This document shows, piece after piece, positions 29,433 through 64,000 of a DNA stretch of 64,000 bases. Both the position numbers and the translations under genes were made by a program. Numbering within the stretch: position 1 is the stretch's first letter; each line of letters begins with the position of its first letter. The stretch comes from Anaeramoeba ignava BMAN. Lineage: Eukaryota > Protista > Anaeramoebae. The notes beneath the pieces are model-generated. The model was not told where the DNA came from. It made no database searches and saw nothing but the letters and a program-made list of their open reading frames with translations. Location: NCBI GenBank assembly GCA_028826165.1, contig JAPDFW010000003.1:1-64000 (forward strand), written 5' to 3'.

Positions 29433-30575
29433 ATGGATTTAAATGTATTTTATAATTTAAAAACTTTAAAAATTCAAAGTTATTCTTATTCTGTTTGTTT
29501 TTTTGTTTTTTAGAATTCAAATGAAATAATTTTTTATTTTTTTGGTTTATTTTCTTGTAATTCAATTCAAAATGATAAGGATTTAATTAATATTTTTATC
29601 AAAAAAGAAGATTTTAAATTAGTGAAAAAAATTTCCAAAATTTTTGATTCAAATCAAAATATAAATTTGGATCTAAATTCAAATTCAAATTCAAATTCAA
29701 ATTGGATTACAATTAATTTACCTAAATCAATGGTTCATTCACTTTTAATCAAAACAGGATTTAAAGAAAACGAAGAATTCATTTCAAACAAAGAAATCAA
29801 AATAGATCATCTCCCAGATAACACAAAAGAGGAATTAAAACTCGCATTTTTTAGAGCCATTTTTGATAATTATGGAACAATTGAAAAAACACTTAAAAAT
29901 TCACCAATTTGTGTTTTATTTCTGAACCAAAATATAAATATTTCTCATCTTCCATCCGTTCCTTTTGAAAAGACGCCAAGAGGAATTGAATGGGAAGGTG
30001 TTAGTGCTTTTGATTTACTTTCTTGCCTTTATAAAAACCCCAAAATATACAGCAAACATAACTATAAAAAATATGTGGAACTTTCAAATCACAATTTCCA
30101 ATTCTTGAATTCAAATCAACCAAAACAACTCGAATTCCATTTCACAAAAGCATTAGAAGAAGCAATAGAACCACAAAAGCAAAACGGTTCAGATGCTGGA
30201 TTTGATCTTTGGATTGTTAAGAAAATCAAAGAGCAAAACAATGTCCACTATTTTGATACTGGAATTATTGTTGAACCTCCTTTTGGATTCTATTTCGATA
30301 TGGTTGCAAGAAGCTCCATATCAAAAACTGGTTATATTCTTGCTAATAGTGTTGGAATCATCGATTCTGGTTATCGAGGTCATGTTATTGTTGCCTTGAT
30401 AAAACTTGATCCAAAATTCCCAGAAATTCAACTTCCTGCAAGAATTGTTCAACTCATTCCAAGATTATTCTGGCATATGAATTGTATTGAATCTAAAGAT
30501 TTGAGTCAGACTACTAGAAATGTTGGTGGTTTTGGAAGTACTCATGATTCTAACGAAAATTCAATTAAAAAATAG
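29433..30575 (+). CDS. dut: Trimeric dUTPase fused to an N-terminal degenerate LAGLIDADG-like domain (exons 29433-29444, 29514-30575)
   Basis: All five dUTPase motifs are present (AGFDL, ARSS, GIIDSGYRG, RIVQL, RNVGGFGST). The N-terminal half has FYFFGLFSCNS and LAFFRAIFDNYGTI helices. 69-nt GT..TAG intron after MDLN. Confidence 0.85.
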
Positions 30576-30828: not shown

Positions 30829-33800
30829 TTAAAATAATTGTTTTGCTTTTTGTTTTAATTCATCAGCTTTCATTGTTTTGCAATTCTTTCCAATCCAAGT
30901 TGTCGCTTTTTTAGCAATTAATTTCCATTCAATAGATTTATCATTAAAAAAGATTTCAAAATAAGTAAGTGCAATAGCTGTTGCCCAAATAATTTCAGAA
31001 ATATCTTTTGGAATATTATCAGTAATCTTCTTTTTATCAATTCCCATTAAAGAAATAAAAGAACTTGAAAGAGGAAATGAACCATCTGCATTTTGAAGAT
31101 CAATTACTTTATAAAGATTTCCAGAAGGTTGAGTTGGTTTTGGAGGTTCTTTTGGTTTCATATCAAAATGTGAAACAAAAGCATCATCTTCCATTTCCAT
31201 TTCCATAAGACTTTCTTCTTTTAATTGAGGACTAAATGCTTCTTTTTTTGACATTTCAAAATCCATTGAAAGTAAATTAAGAGAAGGTTGAAGTTGTTGT
31301 TGTTGTTGTTGTTGTGCTTGTTGTGGTTTTTGTATAGATTCAAATGCTAATAAATCACTGAATTGATCTTTTTCTTTTTCTACTTTTTTTTTTTCTGAAC
31401 GTCTTGATAAAGATCTTGATTTAACAGATTTATCCATTGATTTTTTTGGAGAAGAATCTTTTTTCTTCTTCATTTTCAGTGAATCTTTACTAAATGCATT
31501 AATTGAAGATAATAAACTATCTCTTTGAGGAGGTTCATAAGATTTTTGAGGAAGTACTGCTGTTGATTTTGGTTGAGGAGGAGGAATCATTGGAGGAGGA
31601 CCACCACCACCACCACCCATTGGTGGAGGAGGAGGACCCATTAGAGAAAAACTATCACCCATTGGAGGAGGTATTGTGGGAATTGATGTTGGAGGAGGTG
31701 GTGGTGGTCCACTTCTTTGTTGGCTGTATACCATAGGTCTTGGTGGTGGTTTAGATATTCCTCTTCCTCTTCCTCCTCCATATCCAGTTGGTGGAGGACT
31801 TTTATTAAATCCTCCTCCAAAGAAGTTTCCTCCTAATGATGGCATTGGTTTAGATGGTGGTTGTGCTCCAAAACTAAGTGATTGTTGTGCCATTGATGTT
31901 GATGTTGTTGAAAATTGTGATTGAAATACTGGTTGTGTTTGTTGAACTGATATTTTACGAGTAATCATTTCTCCTAAATCTTGTTCATTTGAATCTTGTT
32001 CTAAATCTTTAACAACTGAAATAAAACTTGTTTTACTTGACATAACTCCTGCTTTGGTTGATAATTCAATTATTTTCTTATCAATATCTTTTTCTGTTTT
32101 TCCTGTTATTACTTTTCCATTTTCATCATGAAATTGACTTATTTTATTTTCTAAATCTTTAATCATTTTTCTTGCTGCTAAACAATGAATTGATTTTCCT
32201 TCAATTCCATCTTCTTTAGGATTTAATTTCATTTTCCATTCTACTTTTTTTTCTGATGATATTCCTCTTAATGTTGCTTCAACTTCTTCTCCATTTTTTA
32301 ATAATGCATATACAAGAAGTCTTGTTTCAGCAAATATTGATGGTAATCGATATGGAACAACAATATCGGGTTTAGTTCCTTTCCATTCAATTTTAACATT
32401 GGTTATTGCTGGTTGTAATGCTCTATTAAGTTGTCTCATAACTGATGGTCGAATATCTTCATTATTTACAATAAATTCTGCTTTTCCTCCTCCTGCTTCT
32501 GCTATTCCACTAACTAATGCTCTTGATGCTGATGCTCCAACTCCAAATGTAAATACTCTTGTTGTTGATGATTGGAATCTAACTAAATTAATAATTTCAT
32601 CTGTATTATATACTTCTCCATCAGTTAATAAAAATACTTGTCTTGCATATCCTGTTTTGGGTTCTTTGGAAAATATATATTTTAGTGGTCCAAGTAATGA
32701 TGTTCCTCCAAGGTTAGCTCTTAATTTATTTCCATGTTCTTTAGCTTTTTCTAATGATTTTTGTGAATAAGTTTCACTTTCTGGAAATAATGTTTCATAT
32801 CTTGATCCAAATCCAATTATATTAAAAACACAAGTTTCAGGAATTGCATGTAAAAATATTTTTAAAGTTTCAGCAACTGATCTTATTGGTGAACCACTCA
32901 TACTTCCACTTCTATCAATCAAAAATATTAATTCAGTTCTTACATCTTTTTCTGAAAGATCTGGATAAAATGATAATAAAGCTGCATATTCTTTTTCTTC
33001 TTCATTTTTGGTTTTTTCATATTGGATAATTGCTCTTGGTTGATGAGGTTCTGAAACTTCAATTAAAACTTCAAAATCTTTTGAAAATGATTCTTTTGGA
33101 TCTGAAAGTAATGTAACAGTTGCAAATTTCTTATTAATTTGAGATGAAATTTCATGAGATTGAGATTTAATGTTTGTAATTTCACTTGCCATTGTAACAT
33201 TAAGATTTAAAGATAAACCAAATGTAACTTTTGGAGTATAATTTGTTTCAAGAAGGGGAGTAACATCATTAATTTCCATTTCATTAGGAACAAAAGGAGG
33301 TGTTATTGTTGTTGGTAAAAAGAATCTTAATTCTTTATCTTCTGTTGCAATTAATTCTGTAACATATCTTATTGTAACAATACATTGTTTTTCAGGAGGA
33401 ATATTTCCAACACTCATATTAAATACTCCTTCAATTTCTTGTTCCATTTTGATTCTATTTTTATTTTTAAATTAAATATAAATTAAATATAAATAAAATA
33501 TTAATAAAAAATAAATTAAATATTAATAAAATATAAATTAAATATAAACAAAATATTAATTAAATATTAATAAAATATAAATTAAATATTAATAAAATAT
33601 TAATTAAATACAAATTAAATATAAATTAAATATAAATTAAATATAAATTAAATATAAATTAAATATTAATTAAATATAAATAAAATATTAATAAAATATA
33701 AATTAAATATAAATTAAATATTAATAAAATATAAATTAAATATAAATTAAATATAAATAAAATATAAATTAAATATTAATAATAAAATTAAATATAAATT

Positions 33801-35123
33801 AAATATTAATAATAAATTAAATATAAATTAAATATAAATAAAATATAAATTAAATATTAATAAAATATAAATTAAATATTAATTAAATATTAATAATAAA
33901 TTAAAATATAAATTAAATATAAATAAAATAAAAATAAAATAAAAATAAAAATATTAAATAAAAATATAAAAATAAAAATTAATAATAAATTAAATATAAA
34001 TTAAATATTAATTAAATATAAATTAAATATTAATTAAATATTAATTAAATATTAATTAAATATTAATTAAATATAAATAAAATATAAATTAAATATTAAT
34101 AATAAATAAAAATATAAATTAAATATTAAAATAAAAAAATTAAATATTAATTAAATATTAATAAAATATAAATTAAATATAAATTAAATATTAATTAAAT
34201 ATAAATAAAATAAAATATAAATTAAATATAAATTAAATATTAATAATTAAATATAAATTAAATATTAATTAAATATAAATTAAATATTAATTAAAATATA
34301 AATTAAATATTAATTAAATATAAATTAAATATTAATTAAATATTAATTAAATATTAATTAAATATAAATTAAATATTAATAAAATATAAATTAAATATTA
34401 ATAATAAATTAAATATAAATAAAATTAATAAAATATTAATAAAAATATCAATAAAATATTAAATACAATATTAATTATTAATTAAATATTAAATACAAAT
34501 TAAATACAAATTAAATATTAATAAAATATAAATTAAATATTAATAAAATATAAATTAAATATTAATAAAATATAAATTAAATATAAATTAAATATTAATT
34601 AAATATAAATTAAATATTAATAAAATATAAATTAAATATTAATAAAATATAAATAAAATATAAATAAAATATTAATAAAATATAAATAAAATATAAATTA
34701 AATATTAATTAAATATTAATTAAATATTAATAAAATATAAATTAAATATAAATTAAATATAAATTAAATATAAATAAAATATAAATTAAATATAAATAAA
34801 ATATTAATAAAATATCAAAAATGAAATAAATACGCTGTGTGACCTTGAGCAATAGCATCATCATATTTATCTTTTGCTTTTTCTTTTTCTTTTACTTTTC
34901 CAATAACATGTTTTCCTTCCATAAATACTTCAAATCCACAAATTGAACATTCTGGATCAAGCGGAAAAACGAAAATAGTTTCTATTGGTTGTTTTTCTCT
35001 GTTTTCATATCTTTGATTAATTGTAACTTCTGCTGTAAAATCAACAATATTTGCTGTAACTGATACTCCTCTTAATGGAACACTTTCTTCAGTTTTTTTA
35101 TTTATTAATCCTAATTTAACCAT
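30829..35123 (-). CDS. VIT plus vWA protein (VWA5A-like), paralog 1, Pro-rich/WH2-like cassette (exons 35123-34834, 33454-30829)
   Basis: VIT domain (FVFPLD..ICGFEV), MIDAS DRSGSM..T..LLTDG, C-terminal LQNADGSF..WATAIA..W. The phase-2 intron of 1379 nt joins GHTA|IKMEQ. Confidence 0.9.
33470..34815. repeat. Intronic (AAATATAAATT/AAATATTAAT)n array
   Basis: Fills intron 33455-34833. Confidence 0.9.
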
Positions 35124-39924: not shown

Positions 39925-42900
39925 TTAAAATAATTGTTTTGCTTTTTGTTTTAATTCATCAGCTTTCATTGTTTTGCAATTCTTTCCAATCCAATTTGAT
40001 GCTTTTTTAGCAATTAATTCCCATTCAATAGATTTATCATTAAAAAATATTTCAAAATAAGCAAGTGCAATAGCTGTTGCCCAAATAATTTCAGAAATAT
40101 CTTTTGGAATATTATCAGTAATTTTCTTTTTATCAATTCCCATTAAAGAAATAAAAGAACTTGAAAGAGGAAATGAACCATCTGCATTTTGAAGATCAAT
40201 TACTTTATAAAGATTTCCAGAAGGTTGAGTTGGTTTTGTTGGTTCTTTTGGTTTTTTGGTTCTTTATCTTTTTTTTGTTTTTCTTCTTTTTCATCTTCAC
40301 TTTCAGAATCACTTGAACTTTCTTTTGATTTTGATTTTGATTTTGATTTTGATTCTGATTTTGATTCTGATTTTGATTTTGATTTTGATTTTGATTTTGA
40401 TTTTGATTTTGATTCTGATTTTGATTTTGATTCTGATTCTGATTTTTGATTTTTGTTCTTATTTTTCTTTTTATGTTTATTTTTATGTTTATTTTTATGT
40501 TTAGAATGATTCTCACTCATTTTATAATCACGAGAATGAGAGTGTTTAGCTTTAGAATGATGAAAATGAGAGTGTTTAGCTTTAGAATGATGAAAATGAG
40601 AGTGTTTAGCTTTGGAATGATGAATATGAGAGTTCTGAGGTAAAGAATTATTATATTGGTTTTGTAATGAATAATTCAATGAATTTTGATTTTGATATTG
40701 AGGTTGATATTGATTCTGATTATGAAATTGATTAAAATTATGAAATTGATTAAAATTTTGATTTCGATTATGAAGTTGACTAAATTTTCGATATTGATTA
40801 AAATTTTGATTAAAATTAAGATTTTGATTAAAATTAAGATTTTGATATTGATGTTGATATTGATTCTGATTATGAAATGAATTAGAATTAGGATCAGGAG
40901 GCAAGAGATAATTGTTGGAATTCTGATTATTTTGTGATAACAATATCCCACGATTCGTTTGGGAAGGATGTAATTTCCAAGAATTTATTGGAATTACTGG
41001 AACAGAATTTTGATTATAAATGTTGGTTTCAGTTTGTTGAACTGATATTTTACGAGTAATCATTTCTCCTAAATCTTGTTCATTTGAATCTTGTTCTAAA
41101 TCTTTAACAACTGAAATGAAACTTGTTTTACTTGACATAACTCCTGCTTTAGTTGATAATTCAATTATTTTCTTATCAATATCTTTTTCTGTTTTGCCTG
41201 TTATTACTTTTCCATTTTCATCATGAAATTGACTTATTTTATTTTCTAAATCTTTGATCATTTTTCTTGCTGCTAAACAATGAATTGATTTTCCTTCAAT
41301 TCCATCTTCTTTGGGATTTAGTTTCATTTTCCATTCTACTTTTTTTTCTGATGATATTCCTCTTAATGTTGCTTCAACTTCTTCTCCATTTTTCAATAAT
41401 GCATATACAAGAAGTCTTGTTTCAGCAAATATTGATGGTAATCGATATGGAACAACAATATCGGGTTTAGTTCCTTTCCATTCAATTTTAACATTGGTTA
41501 TTGCTGGTTGTAATGCTCTTTTTAATTGTCTCATAACTGATGGTCGAATATCTTCATTATTTACAATAAATTCTGCTTTTCCTCCTCCTGCTTCTGCTAT
41601 TCCACTAACTAATGCTCTTGATGCTGATGCTCCAACTCCAAATGTAAATACTCTTGTTGTTGATGATTGGAATCTAACTAAATTAATAATTTCATCTGTA
41701 TTATATACTTCTCCATCAGTTAATAAAAATACTTGTCTTGCATATCCTGTTTTGGGTTCTTTAGAAAATATATATTTTAATGGTCCAAGTAATGATGTTC
41801 CTCCAAGGTTAGCTTTTAATTTATTTGCATGTTCTTTAGCTTTTTCTAATGATTTTTGTGAATAAGTTTCACTTTCTGGAAATAATGTTTTATATTTTGA
41901 TCCAAATCCAATTATATTAAAAACACAAGTTTCAGGAATTGCATGTAAAAATATTTTCAAAGTTTCAGCAACTGATCTTATTGGTGAACCACTCATACTT
42001 CCACTTCTATCAATCAAGAATATTAATTCAGTTCTTACATCTTTTTCTGAAAGATCTGGATAAAATGATAATAAAGCTGCATATTCTTTTTCTTCTTCAT
42101 TTTTGGTTTTTTCATATTGGATAATTGCTCTTGGTTGATGAGGTTCTGAAACTTCAATTAAAACTTCAAAATCTTTTGAAAATGATTCTTTTGGATCTGA
42201 AAGTAATGTAACAGTTGCAAATTTCTTGTTAATTTGAGATGAAATTTCATGAGATTGAGATTTAATGTTTGTAATTTCACTTGCCATTGTAACATTAAGA
42301 TTTAAAGATAAACCAAATGTAACTTTTGGAGTATAATTTGTTTCAAGAAGGGGAGTAACATCATTAATTTCCATTTCATTAGGAACAAAAGGAGGTGTTA
42401 TTGTTGTTGGTAAAAAGAATCTTAATTCTTTATTTTCTGTTGCAATTAATTCTGTAACATATCTTATTGTAACAATACATTGTTTTTCAGGAGGAATATT
42501 TCCAACACTCATATTAAATACTCCTTCAATTTCTTGTTCCATTTTGATTCTATTTTTATTTTTAAATTAAATATTGATTAAATATAAATTAAATATTAAT
42601 AAAATATAAATTAAATATAAATAATGAAATAAATACGCTGTGTGACCTTGAGCAATAGCATCATCATATTTATCTTTTGCTTTTTCTTTTTCTTTTACTT
42701 CTCCAATAACATGTTTTCCTTCCATAAATACTTCAAATCCACAAATTGAACATTCTGGATCAAGTGGAAAAACGAAAATTAGTTTCTATTGGTTGTTTTT
42801 CTCTGTTTTCATATCTTTGATTAATTGTAACTTCTGCTGTAAAATCAACAATATTTGCTGTAACTGATACTCCTCTTAATGGAACATTTTCTTCAGTTTT

Positions 42901-43628: not shown

Positions 43629-46600
43629 ATGAGTTTTGGTTTTCGAAACGAATTTGATTTATTTGACTTTGATGATCCAGAATTTCAAGACAGATTTTCA
43701 TCACCTCGAATTAATCAATTTTCATTCCAAGAAGAACTTATTGAATCAAAGTAAAATTTTTTTATTAATTCACGACATTAAATAAAATAACAAAACATTT
43801 GACGTTCTCAATCGTTATTCTTGATTGGAAATTTTTGATTTAAAACAATAAATTCATTCTTTATTTTTTTTTTTAAAATAATTTTTTTTAAATAAATTTT
43901 TTTTAGTCTTCTTCAACAAACAAAAGATTCAACAATTAAGTTTCCAGATATGGAAACAAATTCTAAAAAAGAACAACAAGGCATTCCACAACAGCAAAGA
44001 CAACAAGAAAAGTAAATAAAACCAATTAAAAATTCGAATAAAAATTAAAATTAAAATTAAAATTAAAATTACAATTACAATTAAAATTAAAATTGAAATT
44101 AAAATTCATTTATAATATTAAAATTAAAATTAAAATTAAAATTAAAATTACAATTCATTTATAATATTAAAATTAATATTAAAATTAAAATTAAAATTAA
44201 AATTAAAATTGAAATTAAAATTAAAATTAAAATTAAAATTAAAATTAAAATTAAAATTAAAATTAAAATTGAAATTAAAATTAAAATTAAAATTAAAATT
44301 AAAATTAAAATTAAAATTAAAATTAAAATTAAAATTACAATTAAAATTCATTTATAAAATTACAATTAAAATTAAAATTAAAATTAAAATTAAAATTAAA
44401 ATTAAAATTAAAATTCAAATTAAAATTCAATTTAAAATTACAATTAAAATTAAAATTAAAATTAAAATTAAAATTCATTTATAAAATTAAAATTCAAATT
44501 AAAATTAAAATTAAAATTAAAATTACAATTAAAATTAAAATAAAAATTAAAATTAAAATTCATTTATAAAATTAAAATTACAATTAAAATTAAAATTACA
44601 ATTAAAATTAAAATTAAAATTAAAATTAAAATTAAAATTAAAATTAAAAATTAAAATTTAAAATTAAAATCAAAATTAAAATTAAAATTAAAATTAAAAT
44701 TAAAAATTAAAATTAAAATTAAAATTAAATTAATTTTATAAAATTAAAATTAAAATTAAAATTAAAATTAAAATTAAAATTAAAATTAAAATTGAAATTA
44801 AAATTAAAATTGAAATTAAAATTAAAATCAAAATTAAAATTAAAATCAAAATTAAAATCAAAATTAAAAATTAAAATTAAAATCAAAATTAAAATCAAAA
44901 ATTAAAATTAAAAATTAAAATTAAAATTAAAATTAAAATTTCAAATTAAAATTAAAATTAAAATTAAAATTAAAATTAAAATTAAAATTAAAATTAAAAT
45001 TAAAATTAAAATTAAAATTAAAATTAAAATTAAAATTAAAATTAAAATTAAAATTAAAATTAAAATTAAATTTCATTTATAAAATTAAAATTAAAATAAA
45101 TTAAAATTCATTTATAATATTAAACTTGTCTTTTTTCTTCTTTAAAATTCTTTAAGAAATCGTGAATCAACATCTAATATTACAAAAAACCAATCATCAC
45201 ACTTTCCAATTATGAACCAAGGCACATCAGTATTTAGTTTGTTTCCAAACGAGAGACAGTACCAACCAACATACCAGAAAAATGAAAATATGCAAGGCCA
45301 AATGTATCCGTTTTATCACACATCAGATTACTCAATGGACTTGAATTTTCCAACAAAAGGTTTTGAACAAGAAAAATTTGATTTCGCAAACCCAATTTCA
45401 GATCCAACGTTTTCTCTTATGAGTATTCACGACAAACAAGATTCATTCTCGATGATATCCCCAAAACAAACTTCTATTTCTACACATAAAATACCCCCAA
45501 ATTACGGAAATTTCACAACATATAACTACCAGTTTCCTCAGTATCCAGCCTACAAACCAATCAATAACCAAGTTGGGAATACACTAGATCTTCATGATTC
45601 GACTGATTATAACGACACAAACCCAATTGATTTCATAAAGGCAAATAAAGACCAAGAAAACGATTACGAATATAATTACCAAAATATCAATGAATTCGAA
45701 CAGCCAAATCAAAATACAGGTGGAAACAGGAATAGTGAAAGTTCACTTAGAAATGAGTATGATTACGATGATGAATACAATAACGATTACAGATTTGAAA
45801 ATGAAAATGAAAACGAAAACGAAAATGAAAACGAAAACGAAAATGATAATGAAAACGAAAACGATAATCATAGTCATAATCAAAAAATTAAAAATAATCA
45901 AAATAAATTTGTAAATATAAATATAAATGAAGAACAACAACATGGTAGAAAATCACCGAAAAATTTGAAAAAGAACCAAAAAAGAAAGAAAAAGGAGGTT
46001 GAAGTATCAAATGAAATTAAAAAATCCAAACAAAAAACAAATACGGAGCAAAGAAAAAACGCAGAAAAAAAAAGGGTTGCGAAGAAAGAAATCATCAAAA
46101 GAAAGCCCACTTCGTCGACAAAAAAGTTGCGAACAATCCTAGTGAAACCCAAAGTGAACCCATCGATGCCACTTCAAAACGATGGGAAACAACCGAAAAG
46201 CGAAAGAGCTTATATTCTTCAATGCGCAGGCAAGTTTGGCATCCGCAGATTGCAACCTTTTTGGGATAATTTAAAAACAAGGAAGGTCCCCAAAATAACA
46301 AAGCAAGAGTCAGAAAATTCGAAGGCAAAAAAAGCAAATAAAGAAAAGAAAAAGAAAAGAAACCGCTTTGTCAAGTCAAAGCAGGCAACAAAACATTTCC
46401 ACGAAATCAACTGGTTTGATGAAGAAGTTGCGATTTTTAGAGAATTCGTTGTTGCCTTTGGAAGAGACTGGAAAAAAATCTCCGACTTGATGGGCAACAC
46501 TAAAAGTCCAACACAAATCAAGGCTCTTTATTATAAAAAACGGCTTGAGGTTTTCTCAGACGTTCTTGGAATTGATGAAGATGAGGAATTCGAAATTCCT

Positions 46601-47626
46601 GCCCAAAGAACCATCATAAACAAGCAAAATAATTCAAATCCAAATCCAAATCCAAATCAAAATGAAAATGAAAATGAAAATGATAATGAAACAACTTTTT
46701 CAAAACCTCATTTTGTCGAAAAAACAGAGTTTATCAAAGGAAGTATTTTTCGATCAAACTCAGGATTGCCGCGGATTTTCCAACAAAATACAACGAATTT
46801 AAAGCAGTCAAAAAGTTTGCAACAAATCCACAACGAACTTGAAAAAAATACACTTGAGAATAGATCAATCCTAAATTCAAACTCAATTTGGATAGAATCC
46901 AACGAAATAATGGTTGATCTTGAAAACATGAGCGAAGAATGCGTTGCAAAAGCGAAAATTGTATTCCAAGCAATGCCCCAAATCACGCTTCAAGAAATGA
47001 AGCTTTGGTCAAATATTTTCGACAAAGTCACGCTTCTTGGAGAAACCGAACCTGATGTGAAAATGATTCGCGACTGGAAATCACTAACAAATGCGCATTT
47101 CTCAAAACTGAAGATTGGAGAGCCTCATTTATTTTATGCAGAATATATTTCCGTTTTCCACGAAACACTTTCTTTGATTCCAATTAAAAACGCAATCAAA
47201 TTAATCACAATCCAAAATCTTGACGAACAGAAATCGTGGATAGCTGAGTATTTTGTTGCAATTTTACTTGCGTTGACAATTTCAATTAACCATTCTGTTC
47301 TTAAAGAAAAACTTGAAAAATCACAAGTTGTTTTTTCTTTTGATCGAATTGTTAATGATAAAGAATTCACTCAAATGTCAAAACAAAGTTTGAATTCAAT
47401 TAAACTGTTTTTATCTTGGTTGGAACTTCGTTTGCAAGCTAAAAAATTCCTCCAAATTAAAGCTGAGCAAATTAGTTCTATTCATATTCGCAACATTAAC
47501 GAACTCACTGAAACTACTGATATTTTAGTTAAAATGAGAGATCTTATTCAGGAATTTAGAATGTTTAAATTATTGATTCTCGAAATAGTTTCTCAAGTTT
47601 TCATTTCATTCATTCAAACAATTTAG
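43629..47626 (+). CDS. SANT/Myb-domain protein (exons 43629-43750, 43907-44011, 45157-47626)
   Basis: WFDEEVAIFREFVVAFGRDWKKISDLMGNTKSPTQIKALYY SANT repeat; two phase-2 introns join the upstream exons in frame to ORF 45212. Confidence 0.8.
44040..45122. repeat. Intronic (AAAATT)n array with CATTTATAAAATT variant units
   Basis: Fills intron 44012-45156. Confidence 0.9.
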
Positions 47627-47980: not shown

Positions 47981-50900
47981 ATGTCAATTTTTTCAGATAA
48001 ATTATTTGATTCTTTTCAAATAAATAAAAAAAAACCTTTAAAAAAAAAAGAGGAAACAAATCAATTTAAAAATCCAAATCAAAAAATATATACAAAAAAT
48101 TTTCAAAAGCCAAAACAAAAAAACGTACAAAGAAATAAAAAGAAAATTAATGAAAAAAGTCAAATAAAAAATAATTTAGAGAATGAGAATAAAGAAGATG
48201 AAGATGATGAAGATTCTTTAATAGAAAAAGAGAAAATTGATAAAACAATATCAGCAGAAATTGGAGAAGTATTTATAGAAAATTGTTTACATGAAGTTTC
48301 TCTTCCTGAAGGATATGATATTAAAGGAAATGAAGGTTAAAATTAAAATTCATTTATAAAATTTTAAATTTAATTAAAATTTAAAATTTTTTTTTATTTA
48401 TTTAGATATTTTTAATCCTATTTATCCACAAGAACCTGCAAGAAATTATCCTTTTAAATTAGATCCTTTTCAAAAAACTGGAATTGCTTGTTTGAATAGA
48501 GGTGATTCTGTTATTGTTTCTGCGCATACTTCTGCAGGAAAAACTGTTGTTGCTGAGTAAATTCATTTATAAAATCAAAATTAAAATTCATTTATAAAAT
48601 TAAAATTAAATTAAAATTCAAATTAAAATTAAAATTAAAATTAAAATTAAAATTCAAATTAATATTAAAATTAAAAATAAAATCAAAATTAAAATTAAAA
48701 TTAAAATTAAAATCAAAATTCATTTATAAAATTAAAATTAAAATTCATTTATAAAATTAAAATTAAAATTAAAATCAAAAGATATGCTATCGCACAAGCT
48801 TTAAAAAATAATGCAAGAGTTATTTATACATCTCCAATTAAAGTATTTTTTTTCTAAACAAAATCTTTGTTTCCATTATTTATTTCCATATTTATTTTAT
48901 AAAAAAAAATCAAGGCTTTAAGTAATCAAAAATATAGAGAACTTAGTGATGAATTTAAAGATGCAGGACTTATGACTGGAGATGTTACAATTAATCCAAA
49001 TTCATCTTGTATTGTTATGACAACAGAAGTAAAAAATTCAATTAAAAAATTCAATTAAAAAATTCAAATAAAAATTTCAATTAAAAAATTCAATTAAAAA
49101 ATTTCAATATTATTACTATTTAATAAGATTCTTCGTAACATGCTTTATAGAGGATCGGAAATTCTCAGAGAAGTTCAATGTGTTATATTTGATGAAATTC
49201 ATTATATGAAAGATATTGGTTTGAAATCTTTTAAATCAAAATTAAAAATGAAATTTAAAATTAAAATTAAAATTAAAATTAAAATTAAAATTAAAATTAA
49301 AATTAAAATTAAAATTTAAAATTAAAATTAAAATTAAAATGAAATTCAAAATTAAAATCAAAAATAAAATTCAAAATTAAAATGAAATTTAAAATTCAAA
49401 ATCAAAATTAAAATCAAAATTAAAATCAAAATTAAAATTAATATTAAAATTAAAATTAAAATTCAAAATGAAATTCAAAATTTAAATTTAAAATTGAATT
49501 GGTAATAATTATTAGAAAGAGGAGTAGTTTGGGAAGAAACAATTATTCTTCTTCCAGATACAATTAGATTTGTTTTTTTATCTGCAACAATTCCTAATGC
49601 AAAAGAATTTTCTGATTGGATTGCAAAAATTCATTCACAACCTTGTCATGTTGTTTATTCAGATGTTAGACCAATTCCTTTACAACATTACGTATTTCCT
49701 GCAGGTGGAAATGGTTTATATTTAGTTGTTGATGAACAAGGAAATTTTAGGGTTATTTTTAATTTAAATTTTTAATTTAAATTTTTATTTATTAATTTTT
49801 AATTATTAATTTTTAATTGAAATTTTTAATTATTAATTTTTAAAATAGGAAAAAAATTTCCAAAAAGCAATGTCTGTAATTTCAAATGCTCCAAATCAAT
49901 GTATGAATAAAAAATAAATTTATTATTCTTTTTAGGATGAAAATGGAAATAATTTTATTGATTTTTTATTATTAATAATTTGTGTTGGAAATATTAAGAT
50001 AATGATAGAAGACCACAAAATCAAAAATATAAATCAGATATTTATAAGATTATTAATTTGATTCTTGAAAGAAAATTTGAGCCTGTTATTGTGTTTAGTT
50101 TTAGTAGAAAAGAGTGTGAAATTAAAGCTTTAAAACTTGCTAAAGTGATTATTTTTATTTGATGAAAGAAAATTATTGAATTATTTATATTTATAATTAT
50201 TTATAATTATTTTTATTGTTGAAAAAATTGAAATAATAGATGGATCTTAATGATGAAAATGAAAAAACTTTAGTTGATGAAATTTTTACTAATGCTATTG
50301 ATTCTTTATCAGATGAAGACAAGAAAATTCCAGCAGTTTGTTAAAAAAAAAAAGAAAAAAAAATATTTTTAATTAAATATTAAAATATTATTATTATTAT
50401 AATTATAAACTTTTTGTTAAAAGGTTCAACATATTCTTCCTTTATTAAAAAGAGGAATTGCTATTCATCATTCAGGATTATTACCAATTCTTAAAGAAGT
50501 TATTGAAATTTTATTTCAAGAAGGTTTAGTCAAAGTATTTGATAATAATTTGATAATAATTTAATAATAATTTCAAAATAATTTAATAATAATTTAATAA
50601 TAATTTAATAATAATTTCAAAATAATTTAATAATTTAATAATAATTTCAAAATAATTTGATAATAATTTAATAATTTAAAAATAATTTAATAATAATTTA
50701 ATAATAAATGATAATAATTTAATAATAATTTAATAATAATTTAATAATAATTTGATAATAATTTCTTTAATAATAATTTAATAATAATTTCATAATAATT
50801 TAATAATAATTTCATAATAATTTAATAATAATTTAATAATAAATTCATAATAATTTGATAATTTATAATAAAAGGTTTTATTTGCAACAGAGACATTTTC

Positions 50901-53272
50901 AATGGGATTAAATATGCCAGCAAAAACAGTAATATTTAGTAGTGTAAGAAAATTTGATGGAAGTTCATTTAGATATATAACATGTGGAGAATATACACAA
51001 ATGTCAGGAAGAGCAGGAAGACGTGGTCTTGATCAAAGAGGAATTGTTATTACAATGCTTGATGAGAAAATGGAACCTTCTGATGCAAAAAATACTTTGA
51101 GAGGAGATCTCGATCCTTTGAATTCTACTTTCCATCTTAGTTATAATATGTTGTTAAATTTATTGAGAGTTGAGGATATTGATCCTGAATATCTTCTTTC
51201 TAAATCTTTTCATCAATTCCAAAATGAAAGAAAACATCCAGAATTACAAGAAAGTATATTTCAAAAATTATTTAAAAAATTATTTCAAAAATTATTTATA
51301 AAATTATTTATAAAATTATTTCAAAAATTATTTCAAAAATTATTTATAAAATTATTTATAAAATTATTTATAAAATTATTTCAAAAATTATTTCAAAAAT
51401 TATTTATAAAATTATTATAAAATCAAATACAAAATTATTTATAAAATTATTTATAAAATTATTTATAAAATTATTTATAAAATTATTTATAAAATTATTT
51501 ATAAAATTAATTATTAAATTATTTATAAAATTATTTATAAAATTATTAATAAAATTATTTATAAAATTATTTTCAAAAATTATTTCAAAAATTATTTATA
51601 AAATCAAATACAAAATTATTTATAAAATTATTTATAAAATTATTTCAAAAATTATTTATAAAATTATTTATAAAATTATTTATAAAATTATTTATAAAAT
51701 TATTTATAAAATTATTTATAAAATTATATATTAAATTATTTATAAAATTATTTATAAAATTATTTATAAAATTATTAATAAAATTATTTATAAAATTATT
51801 TATAAAATTAAATATAAAATTATTTATAAAATTATTTATAAAATTATTTATAAAATTAATTATTAAATTATTTATAAAATTATTTATTAAATTAAATATA
51901 AAATTATTTATAAAAAATTTCAAAAGATCTCCAAAAACTTCAATTACAATTTGATTCTTTAAATATTGAAGAGGAAAAAAGTGTAACAGAATTTCATTCT
52001 GTAAAACAACAAATCGATAATTTAAAACAAAAAATCAAGGAAATCACATTCAAACCAGTAAATATCCTTCCATTTCTTCAACAAGGAAGATTAGTGAAAA
52101 TCAAGACAATAAAACAAGATTGGGATTGGGGAATAATGATTGATTTCGAATATATTTATGATAACAACCCAAAAGGAGAAATAATAATAAATGGAGAAGC
52201 AACAGATTATGTGATGAATATAATAATTGAAACAAAACAAAATTCAAATTCAAATTCAAATTCAAATATAAATGAAGAACCAGAAGCAGTTGAAGAAACC
52301 AATCGAGGAAACGGAGAAATGAAAATATTGCAGTTTCCTCTTCTTAGTTTGGATCAAGTAAGTCTTCTTCGAGTTCCAATTCCAAACGATGTACGAAGAA
52401 GCGAGAATGTTCAACATTATAAAAGAGTTCTTTCCGAAATTCGGAAAAGATTTGAAAAAAACATCCCACTTTTGGATCCAGTGAAGGATATGAAAATAAG
52501 TGATAAAAACTTCAATAAATTTGTGGAAAGAGTGAATAATTTAGAAGGAAGAATGATAAACCAAAAAATATTCCAGAACAATCAAATGACAGAAGAGTAC
52601 CAAAAGTACCAAGAAAAGCTCAATTTACAGGAGCAAATTGATGGTGTAAGAAAATCGCTTAAGGAATCTGAGGATGTTTTATTGAAAGAAAATCTGAAAT
52701 ACATGAAAAGAGTACTGAGAAAATTGGGATATACTAACAACGAGAATATCATTGAAACCAAGGGAAGAATTGCATGTGAAATCAGCTCAGGAGACGAACT
52801 GCTAATTACAGAGATGATTTTCTCAGGAGCGTTTAATGAAATGGAAGTGGAACAAATTGTGGCTTTATCAAGTTGTTTTGTTTTCCAAGAAAAAGTGGAC
52901 GAAATGTTAAAATTGAGAGAAGAACTTGAAACTCCCTTCCAAAAATTACAATCAACAGCGCGATCGATAGCAATGGTTGCGCAGGAATGCAGAGTCGATA
53001 TTGATATTGATAGATATGTTGAATCTTTTAAGCCAAATTTAATGGAAGTTGTTTATGAATGGGCAAAAGGAAAATCTTTTCTTGAAATTTCGAAAATGAC
53101 GAATATTTTTGAGGGAAGTGTTATTCGCACAATGAGAAGATTGGATGAAATTTTAAGGCAAATGTGTGCTGCTGCTCGTGCTATTGGAAATGGAGAATTG
53201 GAAGAGAAGTTTGCTCAAGGAATTACAAAAATTAAAAGAGATGTTGTTTTTGCAGCCAGTCTTTATTTATAA
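47981..53272 (+). CDS. MTR4: Exosome RNA helicase MTR4/SKIV2L2, 12 exons
   Basis: Spliced product has [69 protein letters not shown]-terminal FAASLYL. Introns 48336-48405, 48557-48781, 48843-48914, 49029-49127, 49219-49515, 49752-49848, 49901-49998, 50145-50239, 50336-50423, 50535-50874, 51254-51926. Confidence 0.95.
50535..50870. repeat. Intronic (ATAATAATTTA)n array
   Basis: MTR4 intron 10. Confidence 0.85.
51258..51920. repeat. Intronic (AAAATTATTTAT)n 12-mer array
   Basis: MTR4 intron 11. Confidence 0.9.
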
Positions 53273-55643: not shown

Positions 55644-58600
55644 ATGACGGATCAAAACATATTATTAGGGGAAGAAAACAAATATCAAGGAGAAGAAACA
55701 ATTGAGATAACAGATAAAGATGGGATCAAAGATCCCGAGAAACCAAAAGCGTTACCAATCTGTTCTAAGCCATTAAGAGTAGTTGGAGTGCAAGAAAAAA
55801 GCCCAGTATCATGGTCACCTGATGGGAATATGTTTGCATTTGTGTCAGGAAATCACTCAATTTATTTGATTCGAAAAAATGAACGGAAATCTCAACAAGG
55901 AACAATTGCTCTTTCTTTTTCCGTTGAAGCTACACTTGAAGACCATGTGTCCCCTGTTACTTCTCTTTTGTTTCATCCTAATAAGCCTATCCTTGTTTCT
56001 GGTGGTCATGAAGGTCTTTTTATTTGGGATCTTAGGAATTCTACTTTGAAACAGAAAATTAAAACTGGTTCCCATATTTCCGCTCATGATGGCGCTGTTG
56101 AATGTTTGATTTGGCTCCAGAATGGTGATTGTTTAATTACTGGTATTTGTTTTTGTTGTTAAAAAAAAAAAAAGCAAAAAAAAAAAAAAAAAAAAGAAAA
56201 TTCGATGATTCAACATAATATCTTTATATTTCATTTAGTTTAGAATGAAAATTTATTTTAAAATTAAAATTCATTCCAAAATTAAATTTCATTTATAAAA
56301 TTACAATTACAATTCATTTATAAAATTAAAATTAAAATTAAAATTAAAATTCATTTCAAAATTATTTATAAATTAAATTAAAATTAAATTCAAAATTAAA
56401 ATTACAATTAAAATTAAAATTAAAATTCATTTCAAAATTACAATTAAAATTAAAATTAAAATTAAAAATTAATTTCAAAATTAAAATTAAAATTAAAATT
56501 GATATTAAAATTAAAAATTAAAATTAAAATTAAAATTAAAATTAAAATTCATTTATAAAATTAAAATTAAAATTATAATTTGAAATTAAAATTCAAAATA
56601 AAAATTTAAAATTACAATTAAAATTAAAATTAAAATTAAAATTCATTTTCAAAATTAAAATTAAAATTAAAATTAAAATTGATATTAAAATTAAAAATTA
56701 AAATTAAAATAAATTAAAATTAAAATTAAAAATTAAAATTAAAAATTAAAATTAAAATTACAATTAAAATTAAAATTAAAATTAAAATTAAAATTACAAT
56801 TAAAATTAAAATTAATTTCAAAATTAAAATTCAAAAATTACAATTAAAATTTAAATTAAAATTAAAATTAAAATTAAAATTAAAATTAAAATTGATATTA
56901 AAATTAAAATTAAATTTAAATTAAAATTTAAAATTAAAATTAAAATTAAATTTAAAATTAAAATTAAAATTAAAATTAAAATTTAAATTAAATTAAAAAT
57001 TAAAATTAAAATTAAAATTAAAATTAAAATCAATATTAAAATTAAAATTCATTTTCAAAATTAAAATCTAGTAAATTAAAATTAAAAATTTAAATTAAAA
57101 TTTAAATTAAAATTAAAATTAAAATTTAAATTAAAATTAATTAAAATTATAATTAAAATTCAAAATAAAATTAATATTAAAATTAAAATTAAAATTAAAA
57201 TTAAAAATTTCAAAATTAAAATTCATTTATAAAATTGAAAATAAAATAATAAAAGGATCATCTGATACAACCTTAAAAGCATGGGATATGAGAGGAGATC
57301 AAGCACAATGCATTGATACAATAAACGCACACAAAGCACCAATTCTAGTATTTACGTATTGCCCAGCAACTCAAATATTAGCGAGTGCAGGAAGAGATTC
57401 AACAATAAAATTATGGGATATAAGCAAATTGAATCACTTTTTCACAGCTGATGAACATGAAAAGGATGACACTAGCGTAAAAATAGTTCAAAATAACTCA
57501 ATAGAAGGACATAGAGGTGATATTACTGCGCTTACTTTTACAAGAGATGGTTCTAGAATTTGGAGCGGTGCAAGAGATAATGATATTATTTTGTGGAGTA
57601 CAAAATCAGCTAAAAAAGTTGATTCTATTTCAGGTCATAAAGGTGATATTAAAAAGCTTTTGTTAATGAAAAATGAAACTGTTCTTATTTCTGCTTCTGC
57701 TGATAAGACTATTAAAGTTTGGGAGTTATCTTCAAAAGGTGATAAAGAAGAAAGTAGGATTTAAAATTTAAAATTAAAATTCATTTCAAAATTTAAATTC
57801 ATTTCAAAATTAAAATTCATTTTAAAATTAAAATTCATTTTAAAATTAAAATTCATTTTAAAATTAAAATTCATTTCAAAATTAAAATTCATTTTAAAAT
57901 TAAAATTCATTTCAAAATTTAAATTCATTTCAAAATTCATTTCAAAATTTAAATTAAAATTAAAATTAAAATTCATTTCAAAATTAAAATTCATTTCAAA
58001 ATTTAAATTAAAATTAAAATCCATTTATAAAATTCATTTCAAAATTAAAATTCATTTCAAAATTTAAATTCATTTCAAAATTAAAATTCATTTCAAAATT
58101 TAAATTCATTTCAAAATTAAAATCCATTTATAAAATTAAAATTGATTTCAAAATTAAAATCCATTTTAAAATTAAAATTAAAATTAAAATTAAATTTAAA
58201 TTTAAAATTAAAATTCATTTATAAAATTTAAATTCATTTCAAAATTAAAATTCATTTCAAAATTTAAATTCATTTCAAAATTAAAATTGATTTCAAAATT
58301 AAAATTGATTTCAAAATTTAAATTCATTTCAAAATTTAAATTCATTTTAAAATTAAAATCAAAATTAAAATTCAAATTCATTTATAAAATTAAAATTAAA
58401 ATTCAAAATTAAAATTAAAATTAAAATTTAAATTCATTTCAAAATTAAAATTAAAATTCATTTCAAAATTAAAATTCATTTCAAAATTTAAATTAAAAAA
58501 TTTAAAAAATTAAAAATTTATAAAATTAAAATTCATTTTTTAAAATTAAAATTCATTTCAAAATTAAAATTAAAATTCAAATCCATTTCAAAATTAAAAT

Positions 58601-60312
58601 TCATTTCAAAATTAAAATTAAAATTAAAATTAAAATTCAAATTAAAATTAAAATTTATAAATTAAAATTAAAATTCATTTATAAAATTAAAATTCATTTC
58701 AAAATTAAAATTCATTTCTAAATTAAAATTCATTTCAAAATTAAAATTAAAATTAAAATTCATTTCAAAATTAAAATTTATAAATTAAAAAGAAACCGAA
58801 AAAACGGAAACAAGAGGAGATGGAGGACTTGAGGACGTACTTCAAACAGTGGACAACGAAGCACTGCGAAAAATTCTTGAGGACGACATATCACTAACAA
58901 CATTAATAAAAGATCAATTAGAAGGAGGAGCACACCTATTGAACGAGCTTGAGGCACACGAAGAAGGGATAGCCTCACTAGAGATGTCACCAACGGCACC
59001 ACTTGGGATCACATCATCAATGCACAATTCAATCCGTATCTGGAGCTTTGTGAACCCACTGAAGATCGGATTTGTGCACGAATTCATTGGACAAAGCAAG
59101 GCAATCACATCGATCCGCTTGGACGAGCGAGCAGACGATGATGATTTAAACGAAAACAATCAAGATCAAAATCGAGAAACAGCACTTCGCACTATTTTCT
59201 CAGGATCTCTTGACTACACTGTCCATCAATACGACGTCGAAACCGTTGGTCGATTGATGCAGATTAATTTCCGCAATTCGGTACAATCTCTGGATGTTTC
59301 CCCAGATAAACAATTCCTTGTCATCGGCGGATCTTCTTATGATCTTAAAGGATACGCACTTCATCCAAGTTACGTCAAAGATAACGACGCAACTTGCGTT
59401 CTTCAGGAAGTCGCACGCTTTGTCGGGCACAGCGGGAAGATCAAATACATCGCAATCTCGCCAGATGGAAACATGATGACGTCTTCTTCGAATGATTTCA
59501 AGTTACTGACTTGGAAACTTAAAAAACCGTATTCGCCAAAACGAATGACTCGAGGAGAATTATTAACCCAAAGTGATTTCGATGTTAATTCGTTTGATTT
59601 CAAGCCGGGAGTTCAGCATGTTCTTGTGCCCGAGAAAATCAAGCCAACGGACACAGTCCACGAACATGAAGGACATGTAAATTGCTTTGGATTCAACAGC
59701 AATGCAACATTGTTTGCGTCATGCGGAAACGATCATAAAATTGTTGTGTACAAACCAAACACACGCAAAGCAGGATTGAGCAAGAAATTTGCGCAATCCA
59801 ACGCGCACAATGCGGTTATCGAGTGCATGTGTTGGTGCAAGGATTTCCAATCAAACAAAGAACTTCTTTGCACTGGATCCTGGGACAAAACCGCCAAAAT
59901 ATGGCGCATTGATGACAATCAAAAGGGGATGAAATGCGTGCGAACAATCACTGATCACTGGGGGAAAATTGTCGGTATTGGCGCCTCTGGTGACAACCGT
60001 TTCCTTCTTACTTGTTCCGTTGACTTCACTGTTCGTTGCTTTAGTCTTACTGAGCCCTTTGACTGCGTCGCTTTGTACTCAATCCCCCAGGAAGCCCCCT
60101 TTACTTGTCTTGCCGTTGGAAAAGACTCCTTTGTTACAGGTAGTGAAAATGGTATGCTTAGGGTTTGGCCTATGTTCGGTGGTAGATTCGATAATTCTTT
60201 TATTCAGAAAATCCCTCTTAATGAACAAATTGAATATGATAGGAAATTGGCTGCTATTCAATCCGAGAGAAGAAGAAAAGCAAAGAAAGTTGATAGGACT
60301 CAAGTTATTTGA
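55644..60312 (+). CDS. Large WD40-repeat protein (exons 55644-56142, 57256-57753, 58793-60312)
   Basis: Many GH...WD repeats; phase-1 introns of 1113 and 1039 nt join LITG|SSDTTLKAWD in frame. Confidence 0.9.
56260..57240. repeat. Intronic (AAAATT)n array
   Basis: WD40 intron 1. Confidence 0.9.
57762..58790. repeat. Intronic (AAAATTCATTTCAAAATT)n 18-mer/6-mer array
   Basis: WD40 intron 2. Confidence 0.9.
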
Positions 60313-60514
60313 TTTGATTTGATTTCGATTTGATTTGATTTCTTTTCTTTTCTTTTAATTTATCTTCTTCTGGATTTCTTTCTTTTCGTTTTCATTTTTT
60401 CTTTTATTTCAAAAAAAAAGATCACAAAACAAAACAAAACAAAACAAAACAAAACAAAACAACAATTTTATTTTTATTTTTTTAAACATAAAGTGAACAT
60501 TTTAATTTTTGGTT

Positions 60515-62005: not shown

Positions 62006-62217
62006 AAGAAAATTTTTCCCTTTTTTTTTCCTTTTTTTTAATTATAAAACGTCATAAAATTTAAATCAAATTTACATTTAAAAATTAAAATTTGTTTTTC
62101 TAAAAAGGAGACATTAGAAATTTAAAAGAAAAACAAAAAAAAATAATTTTGCTTTTTTTTACTTTATTTTTTTTTGTTTTTATTTTTTTTTCATTTTCTT
62201 TCTTTTTTAAAAAAAAA

Positions 62218-64000
62218 ATGGTTCGTTTTGGTTTATATCCAAAAAAAAGTACATCACCAGTTTCAGTTTTAGGAGTAGCAGCGCATATAAACGTAAATGA
62301 TTATTTAGCGAATGTTTCATTAACACAATTATATGAGAATAATACTGATAAACCAATTGAATGCCAATTTATTTTCCCTCTTGATGAAACTGCTGTTGTT
62401 ACTGGTTTGGAAATTTATCTTGATGGTGCTCATAAATCTTTAAAAGTTCAAGATAAAACTAAAGCAGAAAATAAATATAATGATGGTATTTCTCGTGGAA
62501 GAACTGCGTATGTTATACAAAAAAATTTTTTTCCCTTTTTTTTCTTTTTTGTTCTTAATTTAATTTAAAATCCAAAATTAAATTAAAAATATATAAATAT
62601 AAATATAAATATAAATATAAATATAAATATAAATATAAATATAAATATAAATATAAATATAAATATAAATATAAATATAAATATAAATATAAATATAAAT
62701 ATAAATATAATTATAAATATAAATATAAATATAAATATAAATATAAAAATAAATATAAATATAAATATAAATATAAATATAAATATAAATATAAATATAA
62801 ATATAAATATAAATATAAATATAAATATAAATATAAATATAAATATAAATATAAATATAAATATAAATATAAATATAAATATAAATATAAATATAAATAT
62901 AAATCTAAATATAAATATAAATATAAATATAAATATAAATATAAATATAAATATAAATATAAATATAAATCAAAATCAAAATCAAAATCAAAATTAAATT
63001 AAAAATATAAATATAAATATAAATATAAATATAAAATAAAAATATAAATATAAATATAAATATAAATAAATATAAAATATAAATATAATATAAATATAAA
63101 AATATAAATATAAACTAGAAATAAGAAATATAAATATAAATATAAATATAAATATAAATATAAAATAAATATAAATATAAATATAAATATAAATATAAAT
63201 ATAAATATAAATATAAATATAAATATAAATATAAAATATAAATATAAATATAAAAATATAAATATAAAATATAAATAAAATATATAAATAATAAAATAAT
63301 AATAAATAATAAATATAAATAAAATATAAATATAAATATAAATATAAATATAAATATAAAATATAAATATAAATATAAATATAAATATAAAATAAAAATA
63401 AATCAAATATAAATATAAATATAAATATAAATATAAATATAAATATAAATATAAATATAAATATATAAATATAAATATAAATATAAATATAAATATAAAT
63501 ATAAATATAAATATAAATATAATTAATATAAATATAAATATAAATATAAATATAAATATAAATATAAAATATAAATATAAATATAAATATAAATATAAAT
63601 ATAAATATAAATATAAATATAATTATAAATATAAATATAAATATAAATATAAATATAAATATAAAAATAAATATAAATATAAATATAAATATAAATATAA
63701 ATATAAATATAAATATAAATATAAATATAAATATAAATATAAATATCAAAAATTAAAAATTAAAAATTAAAAAAGTTTCAGAGCACAGAAACAGGCAAAC
63801 ATCTTCAAAATTGATGTCGGAAACCTTAAACCACACAACAAATGCATCCTCATTTTCAAATTCATCTCCCTTTTAAACATGGACTCAGACCAATCAATCA
63901 AATTCATTCTTCCCTATTTCAACGTAACACAAATTGACGATAAAAAATACGAAGAAATCTCAAAAGAATTCCCACAATTTCCATCAGCACCACCAAAAGG
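62218..64000 (+). CDS. Divergent VIT-domain (VWA5A-like) protein, 3'-partial (exons 62218-62507, 63776-end)
   Basis: FIFPLDETAVVTGLEI..AENKYNDGISRGRTA|FRAQKQANIFKIDVGNL aligns with the tandem VIT-vWA paralogs; same 290-nt first exon and phase-2 intron (1268 nt). Confidence 0.85.
62590..63746. repeat. Intronic (ATATAA)n array
   Basis: Fills intron 62508-63775. Confidence 0.9.

Follow-up and report, generated by a model that had tools for sequence, protein, structure and literature searches.

We analyzed a window of 64,000 bp (positions 1–64,000 of the 103,549-bp contig JAPDFW010000003.1, here C5, in a 42.8-Mb assembly) from Anaeramoeba ignava BMAN and found that the silent sites of a WD40-repeat gene at 55644–60312 switch, within each exon, from mostly A-ending to mostly T-ending, and start again with A after each intron. 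This sawtooth belongs to the nucleic acid and not to translation; AT-rich non-coding DNA, in the form of long introns and intergenic tracts (here called spacers), serves as its anchor. On the strand that runs 5' to 3' out of the nearest spacer, the silent sites of a coding island are A-rich and T-poor; on the strand that runs 5' to 3' towards the next spacer, these sites are T-rich and poor in purines over the last ~220–340 nt. According to our in silico analysis, the most likely cause would be a strand-polar bias in mutation or repair acting at the DNA level beside AT-rich spacers, which we put forward as a leading but tentative explanation.

Exons were called with a self-trained codon model that treats A and T at third positions as one class and is thus blind to the A/T effect; these are our own calls, with ends good to ~10–15 nt. 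All segments of at least 250 nt (n = 55) were submitted to a likelihood test with a single change point and 500 shuffles, and amino-acid content in the WD40 exons was controlled by Cochran-Mantel-Haenszel (CMH) tests stratified by codon box. Four-fold degenerate sites are called R when they end in a purine (A/G) and Y when they end in a pyrimidine (T/C). Detection of skew steps over all codon positions was too blunt a method. The spread of the pattern was sampled on this one contig (103.5 kb), and the sister species A. flamelloides was sampled on 138 kb around the homologues of three genes. The A. ignava genome paper reports an A+T content of 80.65% overall and 91.86% in introns.

Silent sites switch within each WD40 exon and reset at both introns

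The WD40 gene lies on the plus strand, with exons at 55644–56142, 57256–57753 and 58793–60312. Its product is identical to A. ignava M0811_13830 (P0001, 838 aa), and this public protein confirms the exon coordinates and frames. WD40 repeats are present in all three exons (Pfam). Exon 1 is made of an A-ending block (55644–55909), where 27 of 32 four-fold sites end in A/G, and a T-ending block of 233 nt (55910–56142), where 36 of 38 end in T/C (change-point log-likelihood ratio, LLR, 23.6). The switch lies at ~55910, and the counts are exactly those of an earlier reading made from the letters alone (the sequence-only reading). The same reading had exon 2 starting over with purines and ending with pyrimidines. 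This order holds, while the counts are now 20 R out of 23 sites in the A-ending block (57256–57448) and 27 Y out of 37 in the T-ending block of 305 nt (57449–57753), with the switch at ~57449. Exon 3, which had been described as A-rich at its start and T/C-rich at its end, indeed has an A-rich head of ~400 nt and a terminal T-ending block of 340 nt that reaches the stop codon (59973–60312; 45 of 49 sites Y; LLR 25.7); the part between them is mixed, and head and middle together cover 58793–59972. The T block extends beyond the stop codon into a T-rich 3' flank (60313–60420), which then flips to an A run.

Shuffling never produced a switch of this size in any of the three exons (0/500 each, permutation p < 0.002 per exon), and the switch persists within codon boxes, with CMH p values of 2e-7, 9e-4 and 2e-9 for exons 1, 2 and 3. 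Chance and amino-acid composition, the latter named by the sequence-only reading as a possible refutation, are thus ruled out as the source of the WD40 switch by the permutation and codon-box-stratified tests.

We then compared the four-fold sites on both sides of each intron. The last 25 sites of exon 1 are all Y (25/25), versus 5 of the first 25 in exon 2 (p = 2e-9); the last 25 sites of exon 2 include 20 Y, versus 5 of the first 25 in exon 3 (p = 5e-5). A transcription-associated strand asymmetry with one sign per unit is ruled out, as every patterned exon contains a change of sign, and another one follows in or at the spacer. A replication skew, which extends over tens to hundreds of kb independently of exons, is ruled out as well by blocks of 0.2–1 kb that are phase-locked to exons.

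Both introns share the sign of the A/T skew with the head of the next exon. Intron 1 (56143–57255) is T-rich over its first ~18 nt, continues with an A run and then with an A-rich AAAATT-type satellite of 2–6% GC; the whole 1.1-kb intron stays A-rich and no symmetric flip is found inside it. Intron 2 (57754–58792) is an A-rich satellite with a AATTCATTTC/ATAAAATT unit and an AAG acceptor. In these kilobase introns (56200–57255 and 57754–58790), the AAAATT-type satellites are interspersed with a sense-oriented AATTCATTT(A/C)(T/A)AAAATT unit, and the same satellite occurs in introns of unrelated genes (the upstream intron of NuoF; 72391–73080 downstream) and in intron 1 of a paralogue of the WD40 gene on contig C125.

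This paralogue, which is 83% identical, flips at the same codon and has the same kind of satellite intron. An assembly artefact is ruled out by this shared flip, by the intact reading frames and by the match to the public protein. The C125 copy of the first exon (G000:C125:132345–135843) has the same length; the satellite upstream of it is unrelated and the one in its intron is the same. From sequence comparison, the C125 copy suggests a segmental duplication of the whole WD40 gene.

The switch is found in other genes of the contig

A significant switch was detected in 20 of the 55 segments, and its direction in the sense strand was R to Y in 18 of them. The remaining two (14526–17753 and 40212–40640) go from Y to R. 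No significant switch was found in the other 35 segments, so the pattern is not universal. When paralogue duplicates were dropped (n = 48 segments), the four-fold A/T skew was higher in the 5' zone than in the 3' zone in 34 segments versus 14 (Wilcoxon p = 0.001).

The genes in which the sequence-only reading had noticed the same polarity all show a significant R-to-Y switch. An internal exon of MTR4 (50884–51255, plus strand) has 19 consecutive A at four-fold sites and then becomes T-rich (0/500 shuffles). The first exon of a VIT-vWA gene (62218–62508, plus strand; p = 0.006) and the exon of the dUTPase gene (29622–30575, plus strand; p = 0.010) behave in the same way. Three tandem genes with a single open reading frame (ORF) each (19450–23042, plus strand), first described as PLD-like and here as Zn-dependent phospholipase C-like (PLC-like), are A-rich at first and then run to as many as 30 consecutive T at four-fold sites in each gene. 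NuoF, prefoldin, a Myb-domain gene and a zf-CCCH/RING gene also have a significant R-to-Y switch. The Myb-domain gene (45155–47626, plus strand) has an A-rich body and a T-ending final stretch of ~330 nt. On the minus strand, the zf-CCCH/RING gene (28388–29233) presents the full pattern and is one of only two such minus-strand genes on the contig.

Other segments behave differently. Where exons and the introns between them are both short, as in the 5' part of MTR4, little pattern is seen. A gene for an FG-GAP/fn3 surface protein with a C-terminal membrane anchor (14526–17753, minus strand) is a counter-example, being T-rich first and A-rich last (Y to R, p = 0.002); this reversed gene may be a recent arrival or may be differently governed.

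Extent and composition of the two blocks

The T block is anchored at the 3' end of the exon and measures 219–339 nt in 11 of the 15 clear cases. The sequence-only reading had placed the switch near the exon midpoint, which is the case only in exons up to ~500 nt; in long exons the T block is the final 220–340 nt and the middle is mixed. Four-fold A/T fractions in long exons are.63/.26 over the first 150 nt,.47/.33 in the middle and.29/.64 over the last 150 nt, so that both ends depart from the mid-exon baseline. In some long exons we observed a weaker internal T/C patch followed by a return to A (WD40 exon 3, ~59170–59490; C5, ~64800–65300). Such a patch looks like a second, faded cycle and might mark the place of an intron that was lost; at that place, the WD40 orthologue of A. 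flamelloides is free of introns.

In patterned exons, the four-fold composition of the R block is A.63, T.19, G.09 and C.08, and that of the Y block is T.67, A.23, C.08 and G.02. The two blocks are nearly mirror images of each other in base composition. Two-fold sites shift in complementary directions from the R block to the Y block, the C fraction of NNY codons falling from.27 to.17 and the G fraction of NNR codons rising from.11 to.16; leucine codons change from TTA to CTT/TTG, and isoleucine codons move away from ATA. Codon positions 1 and 2 barely change between the blocks. Beyond the coding sequence, ~100 nt of the 3' flank or untranslated region (UTR) and the first ~18 nt of intron 1 are still T-rich, and an A run comes next. 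An A-rich stretch directly precedes the start codons, with a T-rich promoter region upstream of it.

At start codons, this arrangement consists of a T-rich stretch with repeated TCATTT-type (initiator-like) motifs followed by a short A run (19390–19449, 62150–62217, 29234–29290; L006 5880–5945). A similar step from a T-rich stretch to an A run is present after stop codons (60313–60430) and after the donor of intron 1 (56143–56200). By their sequence, gene ends and the starts of long introns look promoter-like.

Directional poly(dA:dT) tracts act as nucleosome-excluding boundaries at yeast nucleosome-depleted regions. Selection could act here at the level of chromatin, the T-then-A steps of the spacers being such boundaries and the flanking ~2 nucleosomes of coding DNA carrying a matching silent-site polarity, with A on the way out and T on the way in. 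The steps described above at start codons, at stop codons and after the intron 1 donor would fit this explanation, as would the excess of T|A steps in non-coding DNA (14:2), a block length of 220–340 nt that is close to two nucleosomes, and the symmetry of the pattern under reverse complement. However, third-position A/T autocorrelation in long exons is positive up to ~180 nt and then flat, with neither a negative lobe nor a repeat; it just decays, and this analysis detected no periodicity of nucleosome length (~150–170 nt) in these exons. A nucleosomal signature, with its oscillation of 150–170 bp, is thus not what these exons display. In addition, the 1.1-kb intron is A-rich throughout and not symmetrically flipped, and the heterogeneity between genes and strands is not accounted for. 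We consider selection by chromatin unlikely.

In long exons, the G+C content of silent sites (GC3) is lowest at the ends, beside the tracts. This bears on a strand-asymmetric biased gene conversion, in which breaks in AT tracts would lead to heteroduplexes, and unequal repair of A.A and T.T mismatches would favor T on one flank of the break and A on the opposite one. Such a process would have the right polarity and mirror symmetry, and a fixation bias would be expected to give sharp switches and high plateaus; but the GC3 minimum beside the tracts is the opposite of the maximum that conversion predicts. Programmed meiotic breaks are doubtful, too. Six-frame searches of the whole genome found no Spo11 domain (PF04406, PF21180), although exon splitting could hide short domains, and no DMC1 has been reported in Anaeramoeba (PMC12722695). 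Spo11 hotspots in the tracts are thus a doubtful source of breaks, and gene conversion appears very improbable.

The polarity follows intron positions in A. flamelloides and A. ignava NuoF

Only 2 of the 24 A. flamelloides exon segments have a significant switch, and both are exon 2 of NuoF paralogues. Over these 24 segments, the difference between 5' and 3' skew was 0.13 and not significant, and the homologues of the WD40 and VIT genes did not flip. The pattern is therefore not quite specific to A. ignava, as NuoF of A. flamelloides has a weak version of it.

NuoF allows a direct comparison, because its introns differ between the two species: they follow residues 58 and 111 in A. ignava, and a single one follows residue 214 in A. 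flamelloides. Directly ahead of its own intron, A. flamelloides has 17 Y to 5 R at silent sites, versus 4:18 in the same columns of A. ignava, where no intron is present (p = 2e-4). Upstream of intron 2 of A. ignava the contrast is reversed, with T:A of 9:3 versus 2:7 (p = 0.03). Fisher p values for T-rich versus A-rich silent sites at the two positions were 0.001 and 0.03. The polarity therefore follows the present intron positions and not the protein. In A. flamelloides, the step from T to A lies inside the NuoF intron (L008 10643–11116). This intron is T-rich over its first ~60–100 nt and A/C-rich over its last ~150 nt, which a short pyrimidine tract follows; C exceeds G in the sense strand on both sides of the step.

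These data leave little room for a translational effect, whether a codon ramp or a position-dependent codon optimality. T-ending four-fold codons, together with TTG and AAG, do resemble the preferred codons of yeast type. But the ribosome never sees introns, and the reset at introns refutes both forms; moreover, the polarity follows the intron positions of each species, the NNC fraction decreases from 0.27 to 0.17 in the T block, and T-richness extends into the UTR and the intron. We regard translation as a scarcely credible cause. The sequence-only reading had argued that codon optimality and a simple transcription-strand bias could not explain a reset at introns, and this argument is borne out by the reset at both WD40 introns, by the NuoF comparison and by the disfavored NNC codons of the T block.

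The two species also differ in their spacers and acceptors. Spacers are extreme satellites in A. ignava, where 20 of 55 segments switch, versus ordinary introns in A. flamelloides, where 2 of 24 do. A. ignava acceptors are AAG or TAG after A-rich sequence and lack a pyrimidine tract, while A. flamelloides keeps short pyrimidine tracts. These acceptors fit a composition code for exon ends, maintained by selection on the pre-mRNA or on co-transcriptional events, since the species with short tracts has only a faint pattern. In such a code, acceptors and start codons would lie in an A-rich and U-poor context, donors and stop or poly(A) sites in a U-rich and purine-poor context, and its readers would help to define large exons where the introns on either side are A-rich kilobase satellites without a polypyrimidine tract. 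The splicing and 3'-end machinery of A. ignava would then read the composition of exon and transcript ends (A-rich at the acceptor or start, U-rich at the donor or end) in place of a polypyrimidine tract, which we see as possible, if doubtful. Phase-locking to splice sites and the agreement with species-specific introns speak for this code, and a bias of ~95% is typical of selection in large microbial populations.

A pure splice-site form of the code is at odds with the single-ORF genes and the start and stop ends, where the pattern is equally strong and no splice site exists; it would have to serve transcript ends too. The exon-definition code proposed by the sequence-only reading is kept here as an uncertain rival. 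The signal also spans 220–340 nt and ~80 silent sites, while known splicing enhancers are far narrower; there is no reason for two different RNA signals to be quantitative mirror images; and many spliced genes, including most of those on the minus strand, have no pattern. One concrete version of such selection on RNA, avoidance of local structure, was rejected, as patterned exons fold no less than their synonymous-position shuffles (mean z = −0.27, 12 exons).

The strength of the pattern depends on spacer, gene and strand

The 3' T block is stronger when the AT spacer downstream of it is longer: lnA/T is −0.12 for spacers of 60–200 nt, −0.43 for 200–600 nt and −0.87 above 600 nt. The exon-end code is consistent with this stronger donor-side block ahead of longer spacers. 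The amplitude increases with exon GC and GC3 (rho ~0.4–0.5), and conserved housekeeping genes (NuoF, prefoldin, MTR4, dUTPase, WD40) have the strongest pattern, the weakest being that of the expanded ankyrin and VIT families. The conserved, GC-richer genes with a strong pattern are probably better expressed, and selection scaling with expression, as in the exon-end code, would produce this distribution.

The strand matters as well. On this contig, the 5' skew exceeds the 3' skew in 24 of 28 plus-strand segments (24:4) versus 10 of 20 minus-strand segments (10:10). A regression gave a contribution from each of strand (t = 4.2), GC (t = 3.2) and downstream gap (t = 2.6), the effect of strand persisting with GC and spacer length controlled. 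This effect may be a coincidence of gene classes, or the pattern may interact with a direction of the contig as a whole, for example that of fork movement.

The two VIT-vWA genes on the plus strand (62218–66149) and on the minus strand (30844–35093) served as a controlled pair, with 38% protein identity. They have a common layout, which is a short exon, a satellite intron of about 1.3–1.4 kb and a long exon. Their GC3 differs about four-fold (0.35 in the plus copy versus 0.07–0.10 in the minus copy) and only the GC3-rich plus copy has the sawtooth; the minus-strand control shows no clear one. A selective intensity specific to each gene, as the exon-end code allows, would fit such a difference between genes of identical architecture.

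A strand-polar DNA-level process as the proposed cause

The sequence-only reading had proposed a bidirectional process launched from each AT-rich tract. We favor, tentatively, a strand-polar DNA-level form of it; the tracts by themselves prove insufficient (VIT pair), and origin firing, one of the processes then suggested, is a poor candidate. Origin firing and meiotic breaks are both poor candidates because the scale is 0.2–1 kb and no Spo11 or DMC1 is detected. A bias in mutation or repair at the DNA level best explains the mirror compositions, the spill into non-coding flanks, the dependence on tract length and the contrast between the two species.

We propose the following sequence of events. 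Of the two strands, the one with its 3' end towards the spacer would time and again stay single-stranded or unrepaired, either as the lagging-strand template behind a fork stalled on entry into the satellite or as a 3' overhang after a break in the tract. This exposed strand would lose purines to T, by a change of the abasic-site or A-rule type, and would undergo some C-to-T and A-to-G changes as well. In a cell that apparently lacks Y-family polymerases and Pol zeta, lesions on single-stranded DNA would be copied with A. Six-frame searches of the whole genome detected no Y-family polymerase domain (PF00817), although short domains could be missed where exons are split, and Pol zeta is reported to be missing from Anaeramoeba (PMC10710043). 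Two-fold sites shift as an excess of C-to-T and A-to-G on the exposed strand would predict; the same shifts would be expected from selection on A/U content, and the main effect lies between A and T. Since genes with identical tract layouts differ, the process would have to be modulated by gene activity or chromatin state.

Several observations weigh against this DNA-level process. The 5' A block is independent of the length of the upstream spacer. The AT tract alone is not enough, as the VIT minus-strand control has the same layout and no pattern, and tracts are not sufficient for most minus-strand genes here either. On average, minus-strand genes of this contig show no pattern, while a process driven by tracts only should be strand-blind. 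The increase of strength in conserved, GC-richer genes is a classical signature of selection. Abrupt switches and plateaus that are ~95% pure would need a complementary rate asymmetry of ~20-fold with a fairly fixed range, which is beyond known nuclear asymmetries. The insufficiency of tracts, the strength in conserved genes and the size of the asymmetry are all as predicted by selection on the pre-mRNA, and the absence of the pattern on the minus strand is explained by neither the DNA-level nor the RNA-level class.

Comparison with known strand asymmetries

Among the closest published asymmetries are some that are tied to splicing. As summarized in PMC10030826, Zhang, Li, Krainer & Zhang 2008 ('RNA landscape') and Touchon et al. 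2004 described opposite strand asymmetries in exons and introns, with one sign per exon and the other per intron, none in intronless genes, and a proposed role as an aid to exon/intron discrimination. They have in common with A. ignava an A/T strand skew that is tied to the exon-intron structure; they differ from A. ignava, where the flip is within exons, the intron is signed like the next head, single-ORF genes are patterned and silent sites are near saturation. An opposite asymmetry of exons and introns is thus not what we observed, since the flip lies inside exons, introns share the sign of the following head and the single-ORF PLC-like genes carry the pattern.

Around mammalian transcription start sites with divergent transcription, Polak and Arndt in 2008 reportedly observed a mirror-image mutational strand asymmetry. 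Like the sawtooth, it is a skew whose sign switches at one point and which reads the same after reverse complementation and fades within a limited distance. It differs from the sawtooth by its kilobase scale, a single switch per promoter, a small amplitude and the opposite A/T sign, while A. ignava has one cycle per unit of exon plus spacer and an A-to-T switch in coding DNA. Vertebrate mitochondrial DNA has a gradient of single-strand exposure, one per genome, which is driven by transitions. It resembles A. ignava in its strong silent-site skew, which arises there because one strand stays single-stranded for a time, and the two-fold transitions of A. ignava shift in the directions that exposure, like selection on A/U content, predicts; but transversions between A and T dominate in A. 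ignava, where the sign reverses at intervals of a few hundred bases and the genome is nuclear.

Species-specific nucleosomal signatures, with a period of ~150 bp along genes, have reportedly been found in fission yeasts (Quintales et al. in 2015 and Gonzalez et al. in 2016 are said to describe them). They too are mirror-symmetric A/T asymmetries written through codon choice. In contrast to them, A. ignava lacks the ~150-bp period and its unit is the exon. Finally, purine-rich exonic splicing enhancers skew codon use near exon ends, acting within tens of bases at both ends. In both cases silent sites at exon ends would be shaped by splicing signals, but the two ends of an A. ignava exon are opposite in composition over ~250–300 nt.

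Meaning for the silent sites of A. ignava

As the sequence-only reading had supposed, our full-text searches yielded no account of silent sites that flip inside exons and start over after introns; what they brought up concerned exon-versus-intron asymmetries, mutational asymmetries centered on promoters and enhancers at exon ends. Nor is the flip mentioned in the Anaeramoeba genome paper, whose text contains neither 'skew' nor 'codon usage'.

Silent sites are usually seen as a near-neutral read-out of one genome-wide mutation bias together with weak translational selection. In A. ignava, they are almost fully set by the distance and direction to the nearest non-coding spacer, according to a rule that reverses within one exon. 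The pattern biases codon models, synonymous divergence (dS) estimates and gene finders for this genome, and makes it possible to recognize, without any annotation, exon ends and introns that were lost or gained in recent times. Given a selective cause, A. ignava would have a new kind of exon-end signal where introns lack pyrimidine tracts, and if this signal is a composition code, codon choice over hundreds of bases would depend on how far away the nearest RNA-processing site lies. Given a mutational cause, this nuclear genome would harbor a very strong local strand asymmetry, which may help to explain the drift to ~81% A+T in a eukaryote apparently without translesion polymerases.

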